Notes: generated by a model from the letters alone, not told the origin. 64,000 bases of DNA from Salpingoeca rosetta (GCA_033442325.1 JAWQFM010000033.1:351029-415028), one strand, 5' to 3'. Positions 37,217-42,150 are shown, counted from the first letter of the stretch. Program-made: numbers and translations.

Positions 37217-38674
37217 ATGGCGCAACGCCCAGCAGCGCCGGCAACAACCGCGGGTGCAACAGTACATTTGCAGCACCCTACACCTCAGCAGCAGCTACAG
37301 CAACAGCAGCAGCAAATGCACCAGCATCCCGGACCGTTTCCAGGCATGCTCGGATTCCAGTCACCACAAATGCACGCATTGCAACAGCAACCCCAGCAGC
37401 AACAGCAACAACCTACACACATGTACCAGCAGTGGATGCATGCACCGCACATGCAGCACCAGCAGCAACAACCAGGGGCGCAGCAAGTGATACCGTCCGT
37501 GTTCAACCATCCGCAACTCTACAGCTTCATGCACGGGCAACAACAGCCACATCAGCAACCACAACAGCAGCAACAGCAACCCTCAGTGAGCAATGCGACC
37601 GGTACAGGGGGCGGCGGCTACGTCCCACCCGATGGTGGGGTGTTGCAGCAACAGCGCATGTTCCACGCGCCGCCGTTTTCCCTGCCATCGTGGCTACAGG
37701 TGAGCGGTGCACATCCTTGGGCGCAGCACGGCCACCACCACCAGCAACACCAGCAACACCAGCAACCGCAGCAACAGTTTTTGCAACAACAGCAACCCAT
37801 CCAGCCCCAGCAGAAGAAGCAAGCGGTGATACCCTCGGTCGTGGCTGGCCCAGGCACGGCTCGTGGCAAGCGCACCTCGTCCCCGCTCGCCATCGCAACA
37901 TCCACTGGCGGGAAAGCGGCAAAGACAACCGGCTCAACGTCGTCGGTGAAGGCGCGGCGACAGCGTGCAGGAAAGGGTGACAGGCGGCAGCACCGCAGAC
38001 AGCAGCAGCAGCAGCACGCAAGGGGTGCAGGGCGCGCGGTCTCATCTGGGCGGTCGTCTAGCGACAAAGGCATGGACACGCACACGGACATTGAATGCTC
38101 GGGCGTGACCGCGGCAGGCCGTCGGCGTGGTGGAGCTGACGGTTACGATGAAGTCGGTGGGGAACAAGACGAGGGAGGTGATGAAGATGAAGGCAGGGGC
38201 CAGGGAGAAACCGCCTCTGCTCAACAACAGCAGCAACAGCAACGGCAACGGCATCAGGTGCAGCCTGGTCCGGGCACGCTTGCTCTGCAGCAGTCATCAG
38301 CATCTCCCCAACCGTCGTCATCCTCTGTGCGCGGGGCAAAGAAGCCCGTAGGTGGTGACGGGAGCCAAGGCGCAGGGCACGGCATGCATGCCTGGCCAGG
38401 CTCCATGTCTGCGTGGATGTCGTCGCACCTGTGGCCAAAGTCGGAGCAAACGGCAACAGAGCCCACCGCCCCGTCGGCACAGCTGCAAATCAAGCAGGAG
38501 CAGCAAGCGGCGTCACCGCAGCAGCCGCAGCAGCACCCTGGCGTGCTGTCGTCTGCGTTGCAGTCGATGTTGCACCCAGGCATGCCTCCGGCAGCGATGG
38601 CACAAGCACTACAACAGCTGCAGCAGCACCCACACCAGCAAACGGCGTTCGCGCCGCAGGCAATGCTGCAAATG

Positions 38675-38706
<32 letters not shown>

Positions 38707-40851
38707 ACAGCAGCAGCAGGACCCAGGCGGCAGCTTGACATCTGTGCCGCCGTCACAGGTTATGGCACAACTTGCTGCGCAGAATATGCAAGGTGGCCAC
38801 CCTGGGTTGGCAAACTTCGCGGGTCTGCCATCACAGGGTATGCAGCCTGCTGGTATGCAGCAGTTTGCTCAGCTTCAGCAGTACCTGCAACAGCAGCAAC
38901 AGCAGCAACAACAGCAGCAACAGCAACAGCAACACCAGCAGCCACAAATACCCTCTGTGCTCGGGCCACATGGAGGCTTTCCTTTCCTACCACCACCGCA
39001 TGGCATGCAGTACCCAGGATCCGCGCAGGGGCAGGGGATGGGCATGCCCATTGCGCTGCCGCCAACAAACATGGATGCGCACCTCTCAAGCACCGTGATG
39101 CCACCGCCACATCTGCGCGGCCTTCCAACAGACCCTGCTGTGCGCTCACGCGAGTTGTTGCAGACCATGCCAGAACAGCACCGCCACCCGCAACCGCCGC
39201 CGGGCCAGGCTGGCAGCCAGGTCGTCTGTCCCATCTGCCATCGACGCGGCCGTCAATCGCCCACGAGGTGTGTGTTTGGTTGTGTGTGTGTTTGGTTGTG
39301 TGTGTGTTTGGTTGTGTGTGTGTTTGGTTGTGTTGTGGTGTGTGTTGTGTTCTGCTGACAGTTGCACATTGATCGTGTGATTTCTTGCTGACCGCGGATG
39401 ATTGGCGAATAATTTTCGCTGATTTTCACCGTTCCCAATGAATTGTGATCGCGTGTTGGGCGATTTCTTCTGCAATGCAGAATATGCTCCGTCTGCTACA
39501 GGTGCGGTGCATCGGTTGTGTGCGCGCGCGCGTGTGTGTGCTGGCGTATGTGTGTGTGTGTGTGTGTGTGCGCGCGTGCGTGTGTGTGTGTGTGTGTGCT
39601 GGCGTATGTGTGTGTATCCTGAGATGGGCTTCGCTGGTCTTCTGTGGCAGAGGCGTAGCCCATCAACAGATGTGTTCATTGCTGAAATGCACCCTCACGC
39701 ACACACTCCCACGCACGCACTCACACGCACGCACTCACACGCATGCACTCACACTTACCTGCACCTGTATTGCAGTGGGCTGTACAATGACGTGCGCAAG
39801 TGGAAACGAATGGTCGGCAACGATGTAGATCCTCACATGACCATGGAAGACTTTTTGCAACGTACGGAGTGGTGTACGGCTGTGTATGTGTGTGTGCACG
39901 CGCGTGTGTTTCGTTGTGTGTTGTGTGTGTGTTTGTTTTGTGTGTGCATTGTGGGTACTTTTTCATGTGCATGTGCATGCGTGTGCACAAGTGCGAGCGT
40001 CATTTTATTCTTCCCCTCTTTCTGTTCGTTGGTTTTGTCTGTTGGTTCTCGCTGTGCGCGTGCACGTAAACATGGTGTGGATGAGCTGTTGTCGCACGTG
40101 TGGTGCATAGTTGCGAATGGATTATGCTTTCTTGCTCAGCTCACACCTGGCACTCATTCCCTCCTCCCCTCTTCCCCACACTCGCATACAACACTTCAGA
40201 ATTGAAAGCCATGCCTCGTGGGTGCACCAATGGCTATCGCTGCAACTATGAACGAACCAGTGGTGGGTTGATTTCTTCATGTCAATTGTGTGTGTGTACG
40301 GGTGTGTTGTGTGACCGAGCGCGCGCACGTGTGTATTGAACACCTGTGTGAATGCATGTGTATGCGTGTGACAGACAACAGTCGGTCGCGCCACACATTT
40401 ATCGTTTTCGAAGCCATTTTGTTCGCCTGACGTTCCCCATTGCATTGCGGATGACACGGCGCTACAATCATGCCGCTTCTCTTCATTTCATCCTCCCCGC
40501 TCTAACATTGTTGCATCATAACCCACTCTTGATACTGAAGCCTCGCCGCAGTGCACACGCTGCCGCACCCTCAAAGTCTGCGCATTTGCGCCTGAACTGC
40601 TGCAGCGAAGTAAGCGCGCGCGTGTGTGTTTGTGCGTGTGCATGTGTGTTTCCGTTCACGTGCGTGTGCGTTTGCGTAAGGCTCATATATCTGAGCCTGC
40701 GTTTGCGTCAGAGTGGCCTTGGGTTGATGTGAAACGAGGGCACAGCATTTCCCAGCCAAACCCATTGTCCACTCACTCTCCCTGCAACTGAACCCACAAC
40801 GCTTTGTCTTCTCACTCCCTCCCTCCCTCCACCACCATCACGCCAACACGC

Positions 40852-40901
<50 letters not shown>

Positions 40902-40927
40902 CTTAAACAACAACAACAACAACAACT

Positions 40928-40982
<55 letters not shown>

Positions 40983-40996
40983 CTTAAACAACAACT

Positions 40997-41033
<37 letters not shown>

Positions 41034-41035
41034 CT

Positions 41036-41129
<94 letters not shown>

Positions 41130-41588
41130 AAACCACCTCTTCCCAATGAATGCAGTTCTGCGTCGCATGGTGCTCAGGCGCGGGCCTGCCTCTGCTGTCA
41201 AGGGAGGCGAGGACGACTTTGAGCCCGGCGACAGCGACGACTTGGTGGGCAGTGGCCGGCCAAGCGACGACGATGACGATGATGATGATGATGACGACGA
41301 TGACGAAAAGGTGCATGGTCGCGGCGGCAGCGGAAGCAGTGGCAGCAGCAGCAGTAGTAGTGATGGTGGTGGTGGTGGTCACGGCGAGACCGGCCCTGTT
41401 GTAAAGAATGACGACGACGCAGAGGTAAACGCGGTTGCTGAAGCGTTGCGTGCAGGCACACGACCAGCGACAAGCACAGCCGATGACGACGACGACGACG
41501 ACGACAACAACAGCAACCAAAACAACAGCAACCACAACAGCAACAGCAACCACAACAGCAACAGCAACAACAACAACAACAAAAGCAA

Positions 41589-41623
<35 letters not shown>

Positions 41624-42150
41624 ACACCAGCAATGACACGAGTAACGACAGCGATGGTGATGGCGCTGGCGAGTGCACGGATGGGCACCACTGCCCCAAA
41701 CCCATGGATGTGGGGATGGACATGCGTGCGGCTGCCAACGCAAGCTCACGCGCGTCGAGCGAAATTGCCGATTCTGAGGAGAAGTTAGGTCGTGTTGAAG
41801 TGCGCCCGGGCCCTGCAGCGGAAGGTAGCAACGCCAACAACAACAACACCAACAACGCCAACATCACCAAAACCAACAACGGCAATGGGCATAAGGCAAC
41901 AGCGCGCACGGCCAGGGCTTCCCCGCCACTACGGCCACACTTGACAATGATGCAGCCAATGGTTGAGACGCGTGCCACTGGGCGTACAACAACGCAGCCG
42001 GCACCAGCTACATCTGCTACTGCCACTCCACCGACCGCCATGGCCACCGATGACGATGACGGTGATGATGGCAGCGGTACAGGCTCGTGTGGTGGCAGTG
42101 GTGGTGATGAGCGCACGAAGCTGCTGACAACGTCGCTCAGCCGCTCATGA
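37217..42150 (+). CDS. Putative transcription factor: Q/P-rich N-terminus, two C4 zinc fingers with nuclear-receptor-like spacing, low-complexity C-terminus
   Basis: Exons 37217-39267, 39481-39501, 39776-39861, 40200-40262, 40541-40609 and 41156-42150 are all GT/AG and phase-consistent. They yield CPIC-x11-CSVC-x38-C-x5-C-x10[10 protein letters not shown]. Confidence 0.75.
40851..41128. repeat. (AAC)n satellite with in-register TTA interruptions, intronic (reverse complement of the 27420 repeat type)
   Basis: Directly visible just upstream of the acceptor at 41155. Confidence 0.95.

Follow-up and report, generated by a model that had tools for sequence, protein, structure and literature searches.

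In textbooks, nuclear receptors figure as an innovation of animals, so any relative of their DNA-binding domain that predates animals is informative about the origin of animal gene regulation. The question is raised here by a gene of the choanoflagellate Salpingoeca rosetta, which lies within a stretch of 64,000 nucleotides (the window; C33:351029-415028 in assembly G000). An original prediction, made from the sequence alone, had joined five short exons of this gene into a domain resembling the double C4 zinc finger of nuclear receptors, and had proposed a non-animal holozoan factor that was either a 'proto-NR' or carried a convergent pair of zinc modules. The source is indeed a non-animal holozoan. 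We ask whether the gene is real, whether it has relatives, and whether its zinc domain can be linked to that of the receptors.

Gene structure and encoded protein

The gene (C33:~388-393k) was modelled with six exons (Table 1), and its five introns all have GT..AG borders and consistent phases. Public transcript runs were compared with the window over positions 39150-40700, a range that stops short of the (AAC)n repeat in intron 5. Two intron-free contigs were retrieved: run X7 (study P3, 2017) gave one of 1028 nt, run X8 (study P4, 2011) one of 1033 nt. They jump exactly over 39268-39480, 39502-39775, 39862-40199 and 40263-40540, and so contain the joints 39267/39481, 39501/39776, 39861/40200 and 40262/40541. 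Both runs bear only the label 'RNA?', which is a guess, yet the introns are missing from their contigs. Splicing of these four introns, out of five in all, and of the micro-exon is therefore seen in two independent studies. In the RNA-Seq raw-read runs X21 and X22 there was almost no depth here and not one joint, the joints being seen exclusively in the contigs. The contigs diverge from the genome at ~40609 and continue for a further 428 nt. The putative fifth joint, 40609/41156, is supported by this departure and by homology, LLQR/ILRRMVL being comparable with HMLLRRAIL of an intronless paralogue. No further coding sequence was found downstream of exon 6, to ~48000. The exons and junctions of the original prediction were thus correct, with four joints in contigs from two studies, and the eight-cysteine domain hidden across these exons exists and is expressed, its transcript basis being the contigs of runs labelled 'RNA?'.

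Table 1. Coordinates of exons and introns (counted from the first letter of the window) and of family loci (contig and position in assembly G000)
Feature	Position	Strand	Basis
Exon 1 (contains the start codon)	37217-39267	+	Open frame; donor 39267 in spliced contigs
Exon 2 (21-nt micro-exon, ICSVCY(S))	39481-39501	+	Both joints in contigs of X7 and X8
Intron 2	39502-39775	+	MFE hairpin prediction
Exon 3	39776-39861	+	Spliced contigs; homology profile of the exon recovers 13-14 genome loci
Exon 4	40200-40262	+	Spliced contigs; family conservation
Exon 5	40541-40609	+	Spliced contigs; family conservation
Intron 5	40610-41155	+	Sequence read directly
Exon 6 (with stop codon)	41156-42150	+	Frame, stop, paralogue homology
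Family locus 1	C33:234557		Profile search
Family locus 2	C28:580811		Profile search
Family locus 3	C18:787911		Profile search
Family locus 4	C30:444880		Profile search
Family locus 5	C8:124155		Profile search
Family locus 6	C36:199813		Profile search
Family locus 7	C13:1015452		Profile search
Family locus 8 (flagged gene)	C33:390802		Profile search
Family locus 9	C7:1625338		Profile search
Family locus 10	C13:1454084		Profile search
Family locus 11	C11:572510		Profile search
Family locus 12	C33:318597		Profile search
Family locus 13	C30:460801		Profile search
Family locus 14	C3:557479		Profile search

The spliced model encodes a protein of 1094 aa. Residues 1-668 are of low complexity and rich in Q, P, G and H (24% Q, 11% P), with a single Cys, in agreement with the Q/P-rich N-terminus originally described. 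They are followed by 104 aa (residues 669-772) that hold 9 of the protein's 13 Cys, contain 15% Arg and have a pI of 10, and then by an acidic tail of 322 aa (residues 773-1094) rich in D, S, N and G, with a pI of 4.2. No Pfam family was found in exon 1 and none above threshold in exon 6, where Utp14 was sub-threshold (E 0.045, 12.8 bits vs a cut-off of 30.2 bits). The ligand-binding domain Hormone_recep (PF00104) is absent from the C-terminal tail according to Pfam, as the original prediction had stated. A homologue search of protein collections gave no matches, whether the query was residues 200-470 of exon 1 or the tail of that exon; these collections appear to lack records from the organism's own genome. 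A peptide of 13 aa from exon 1 recurs identically in a short stop-bounded frame of the metagenome contig Ga0124853_1186028 (L009:1554-1631). This contig was rejected as a relative, and the identity was put down to chance in GC-rich DNA.

The cysteines of the domain are spaced C-x2-C-x11-C-x2-C-x38-C-x5-C-x10-C-x2-C-x5-C, the first eight of them as originally written. The last 16 codons of exon 1 encode the first zinc knuckle (Cys671 and Cys674), and the micro-exon supplies Cys686 and Cys689, which complete putative zinc site 1 as its second ligand pair; omission of this exon would leave the reading frame intact but take away two ligands. Exon 3 encodes a predicted helix that follows site 1 and includes the invariant residues N695, D696 and K699, and a linker helix. 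The invariant residues R726, G727, C728 and C734 are encoded by exon 4, C728 and C734 forming the first ligand pair of putative site 2. Exon 5 contributes the invariant CTRCR (C745, C748), a ninth cysteine (C754) and the onset of a basic C-terminal helix, whose end, ILRRMVLRR, opens exon 6 before the acidic tail begins.

Two of the introns have features of their own. In intron 2, a GU-rich 5' half and a CA-rich 3' half are predicted to pair as a long hairpin, with an MFE of -144.8 kcal/mol vs -120.6 +/- 5.8 for shuffles (z -4.15; none of 200 shuffles as good). Intron 3 gave no hairpin signal in the same folding test (z +0.73). As modelled, the hairpin would juxtapose the micro-exon donor and the exon 3 acceptor, and the pairing could aid the spliceosome in finding an exon of 21 nt. 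Half of intron 5 is occupied by an (AAC)n microsatellite of ~280 bp (40850-41125) with TTAAAC interruptions. Read in frame, it encodes poly-Asn, and a listing of ORFs merges it with exon 6 into an ORF of 448 aa.

A multicopy family in the same genome

Paralogues were retrieved from the organism's own genome (55.4 Mb, 68 contigs) with a profile of the exon-3-type exon, which detected 13-14 loci (Table 1), including the flagged locus with an E of 3.4e-8. Single short-exon queries (22 and 28 aa) missed all paralogues, and a 40-aa paralogue exon used as query retrieved 8 loci, vs the 13-14 of the profile of that same exon. On the same contig, 115 kb upstream, a paralogue has four exons (..ELVCPICTGPGRSSDSR, ICPVCYAGLYNDIRKW.., IPRGCRNGYNC.. 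and GDRCTRCRSLAIC..), which judging by their sequence are plainly homologous to those of the flagged gene. Three copies lie on C33, one of them (318597) 32 kb upstream of the window, two on C30, 16 kb apart, and two on C13. This partial clustering suggests local duplication.

Ten paralogue domains were assembled locally, with splice sites picked by homology. Their mean pairwise identity is 40%, the flagged copy is 38-45% identical to each, and their flanks are of low complexity. In the paralogue at G000:C13:1454084 (L028:1444-1800), a single exon spans the entire domain and a stop follows directly. This copy, L028, shares 39% identity with the flagged domain over 108 aligned positions, and all nine cysteines of the flagged domain are matched in the pairwise alignment. 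The tails differ, the flagged copy having 322 aa and L028 none. Q-rich exons are present upstream of the first knuckle in L011, L012, L020 and L028. Recurrent intron positions in the family follow S-x-x-[KR] and ..DF.. or separate the finger 2 halves. The ICxxCY piece is joined to the next exon in most copies and to the previous exon in C3:557k; as the flagged gene has both introns around this piece, it becomes a micro-exon.

Seventeen residues are invariant in the ten paralogues, all of which are kept in the flagged copy: C671, P672, C674, C686, C689, N695, D696, K699, R726, G727, C728, C734, C745, T746, R747, C748 and R749. The set comprises the eight Cys together with the motifs CP.C, ND..K, RGC and CTRCR, within a longer family signature of CP.C / IC..CY.G.YNDI.KW / PRGC...Y.C / CTRCR. 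Conservation of the eight cysteines, which a genuine domain would be expected to show among its homologues, therefore extends to all ten paralogues from the organism's own genome. The ninth, C754, is not conserved among them, so that eight ligands and two zinc ions are the natural reading. Spacing at site 1 is constant across the family (C-x2-C-x11-C-x2-C). The finger 2 loop is x14 in eight of the ten paralogues, including C18:787k, where finger 2 lies in one exon; L028 has x12, and the flagged copy alone has x10. The x10 loop is thus a shortening by four residues of a family-wide x14, which makes its near-receptor spacing derived and not ancestral.

By sequence, neither a Pfam family nor a solved structure corresponds to this family, and no paper on it was found. 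Its proteins are glutamine-rich and mostly disordered, and their sole conserved part is the eight-Cys module of ~100 aa.

Comparison with nuclear receptor DNA-binding domains

Like the flagged domain, the receptor DNA-binding domain (zf-C4) has eight Cys in two C4 sites, a C-x5-C that opens site 2, and C-x2-C-R; its helix at the second Cys pair of the first site has a predicted counterpart in the paralogue model. The receptor spacing C-x2-C-x13-C-x2-C-x15-17-C-x5-C-x9-C-x2-C is not that of the flagged domain (x2, x11, x2, x38, x5, x10, x2), the differences falling on x11, x38 and x10 (x14 in the family) vs x13, x15-17 and x9. The flagged domain also lacks the receptor core motifs C-E/x-G-C-K-G-F-F-R/K-R and C-R-x-x-K-C-x3-G-M, that is, the CEGCKGFFRR helix and the KC..GM motif, and shares no sequence or profile similarity with receptors. 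According to the models, the family further differs in having two additional predicted linker helices and a terminal helix that is long, and it has no ligand-binding domain.

Searches with sequences and profiles gave concordant results. The zf-C4 profile (PF00105; membership threshold, a gathering score of 21.1 bits) matched neither the spliced domain nor four paralogue pieces, including the whole single-exon domain, at E<=10. Pfam matches of the spliced domain were all below cut-off (zf-Di19, E 0.021; DZR_2, E 0.092), with DZR_2 at E 0.012-0.09 over the spliced domain and the paralogue pieces. Among all PDB sequences, nothing real and no receptor was retrieved with the spliced domain, and nothing at E<=10 with the family profile. 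Local receptor HMMs were built from 66 receptor domain fragments, with cysteine-fixed shuffles as controls. The whole-domain HMM gave -1.4 bits for the flagged domain vs -2.1 +/- 3.3 for the shuffles, and the finger 1 HMM gave 2.7 bits, with 44 of 300 shuffles as good. The second finger, which the original prediction had singled out as receptor-like, did not bear this out: it scored -0.8 bits, 139 of 300 shuffles were as good, and its x10 loop is derived. In hhalign, probabilities were 5.6% for the flagged domain alone against the receptor alignment and 6.6% for the ten-member family profile against the receptor profile. The family alignment placed its second finger-2 Cys on the first of the receptors, a register other than that originally proposed. 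Patterns of GATA, RING, PHD, LIM, MYND and ZZ fingers, compared by eye, did not fit, and these candidates, which also had no Pfam match, were rejected.

A second gene of the same genome served as positive control. In the scan of the organism's own assembly with PF00105, two matches were retrieved, on C31 and C23. The C23 match (C23:207872-208114, locus L003; 16.1 bits) lies within an open frame of 886 aa and reads RCGAC..CTYCIKFF..CFGCLYQRCLDVGIR. Its best PDB sequence matches are SF-1, VDR, RXR and GR, and homologues were retrieved from Salpingoeca infusionum and Choanoeca flexa (EukProt), which also speaks for a choanoflagellate as source of the assembly. The L003 family aligned with receptor domains in hhalign at 88% probability (E 2.9e-6). 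In Foldseek, the 50 best matches of the L003 AlphaFold model (pLDDT 72.9) were without exception receptor DNA-binding domains, with E 0.015-0.07 and TM up to 0.67. L003 really does represent a single-locus family that resembles the receptor DNA-binding domain. Like the flagged family, it consists of Q-rich low-complexity proteins of the same organism, with two C4 sites and no ligand-binding domain. The two families nevertheless share no detectable similarity, the pairwise score being below the shuffle mean, the HMM score -1.1 bits and the hhalign probability 0.3%. Proteins with zf-C4 alone, without a hormone-receptor domain, have been described in choanoflagellates, placing the DNA-binding domain before animals (Lopez-Escardo et al. 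2019; PMC6792448). The L003 family probably corresponds to these 'zf-C4 alone' proteins. The general idea that choanoflagellates have zinc domains of the receptor type with no ligand-binding domain attached has been in print since 2019 (PMC6792448), and that report most likely concerns a family other than the flagged one.

The C31 match (G000:C31:210311-210472; L001:1501-1662) scored above the gathering cut-off, with 24.1 bits, and its peptide reads ..CTANTVFLRRSFKDGRSGVEC..CAGERLQDC. It was rejected, as most ligand Cys are missing and the frame is not coding-like. It is probably a chance match or the remnant of a receptor-like exon.

The structural comparison was made with a model of the paralogue L028, 39% identical to the flagged domain. 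The AlphaFold input (A7) was a patchwork of 24 paralogue exon pieces and held no window sequence; CTRCR exon pieces, which MAFFT had set on the C-R-x4-C of finger 2a, were excluded. The model has a mean pLDDT of 79.8 and a pTM of 0.62, and all five models reached 75-80. It shows a short hairpin at the first knuckle, a helix (22-38) from the second Cys pair, linker helices (40-44 and 50-59) and a long, arginine-rich terminal helix (92-118), which begins 6 residues past the last ligand Cys. Confidence is lower in finger 2 (pLDDT 65-72), and basic residues are few in the predicted helix that follows site 1; both points weigh against the main reading given below.

Receptor DNA-binding domains ranked first when the L028 model was compared with the PDB in Foldseek, with E 1-7, probability <=0.33 and TM 0.3-0.44, in sub-alignments of ~32-37 residues with rmsd 1.5-2.5. 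A similarity of the predicted fold to receptor domains is thus present, but weak (E >=1). An ESM Atlas fold search gave archaeal hypothetical proteins (TM 0.60/0.46) and a nematode zf-C4 cluster (0.50/0.50), together with double zinc ribbons and, at 0.43, an NR5A cluster; by ESM features, MYND fingers were nearest (0.88; a lead only). Judged on the predicted model, the nearest named zinc-finger fold is the receptor DNA-binding domain, and the likeness is weak. It reaches about half the strength seen with the model of the L003 family, and is indistinguishable from a generic layout of two C4 sites with helices.

Alternative readings and biological meaning

With moderate confidence, we read the flagged gene as one copy in a lineage-expanded family of at least 13 loci, whose Q-rich eight-Cys proteins carry a basic zinc module and act as nucleic-acid-binding transcription regulators, without demonstrable homology to receptors. 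The module most likely binds two zinc ions, at site 1 through C671, C674, C686 and C689 and at site 2 through C728, C734, C745 and C748. As predicted, the zinc knuckle would be followed by a treble-clef-like helix at the second Cys pair and two short linker helices, and then by the second Cys4 site, modelled less confidently, and the long arginine-rich C-terminal helix. The module (pI 10, 15% Arg) would bind nucleic acid, most likely DNA, and the Q-rich N-terminus and the acidic tail may be activation or condensation regions. The protein would then be a nuclear, lineage-specific transcription regulator. This is suggested because the basic module lies between Q-rich and acidic disordered regions and the family is a lineage-specific expansion; such expansions are common among transcription-factor families. 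The resemblance to receptors is that of the generic layout only, in which two C4 sites are each followed by a helix.

Alternatively, the two-zinc module may serve protein-protein contacts or RNA binding, in the manner of MYND fingers or double zinc ribbons, and the family may consist of co-regulators or scaffolds. We give this a small but appreciable likelihood, considering the MYND clusters nearest in ESM features (a lead only), the weak Pfam matches to DZR_2 and zf-Di19, the double-zinc-ribbon clusters in the Atlas fold search, and the VIA-wide best matches, which are helical interaction modules (NuA4 subunit, FF domains). With the double zinc ribbon (DZR_2, PF18912), the domain shares a site 1 of two CxxC knuckles 11 residues apart, in addition to Pfam matches that are all below curated cut-offs and its Atlas fold neighbours. 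However, none of these matches is significant, the MYND cysteine/histidine pattern is absent, and the helix Y.G.YNDI.KW and the C-x5-C pair of the family are missing in zinc ribbons. Nucleic-acid binding fits better with a strongly basic module in which R726, R747 and R749 are invariant and the terminal helix is rich in Arg. That the flagged copy is a chance cluster of cysteines or a decaying gene copy without function is very improbable. Its low-complexity flanks and a finger-2 loop four residues shorter than in the rest of the family might point that way, but five introns are precisely placed, the spliced contigs come from two studies, the open frame runs to 1094 aa, and 17 of 17 family-invariant residues are retained.

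We hold it to be unlikely that the domain is a true, highly diverged homologue of the receptor DNA-binding domain, with a long inter-finger insertion, no ligand-binding domain, and DNA contacted via the helix after site 1. Such a 'proto-NR' would account for the first rank of receptors in Foldseek with the paralogue model and for the nematode zf-C4 cluster in the Atlas search. The hhalign comparison of the flagged domain with receptors does align finger 2 with finger 2, and zf-C4-like domains do occur in choanoflagellates (PMC6792448). Against it stand the Foldseek values (E >=1, probability <=0.33), sequence and profile tests that are all at shuffle level, and the lack of similarity to L003, the zf-C4-like family of this genome (hhalign 0.3%, HMM -1.1 bits). 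The finger-2 loop of the family is x14 vs x9 in receptors, and the last helix of the model starts six residues after the last ligand Cys instead of at it. Of the two options originally offered, the convergent pair of zinc modules fits better, and the 'proto-NR' is left without a sequence signal. An origin of the flagged family, the L003 family and the animal receptor domains from one double-zinc ancestor on the choanoflagellate-animal stem, with the flagged family as a diverged and expanded sister lineage, appears improbable.

Two things are thereby separated within one choanoflagellate genome: an expanded, unnamed two-zinc family and a single-locus receptor-like family. The receptor likeness of the flagged copy is weak and stems in part from a derived loop length. 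Its value lies in a transcript-supported gene model and defined invariant residues, and in a candidate family of lineage-specific transcription factors, in an organism amenable to genetics.
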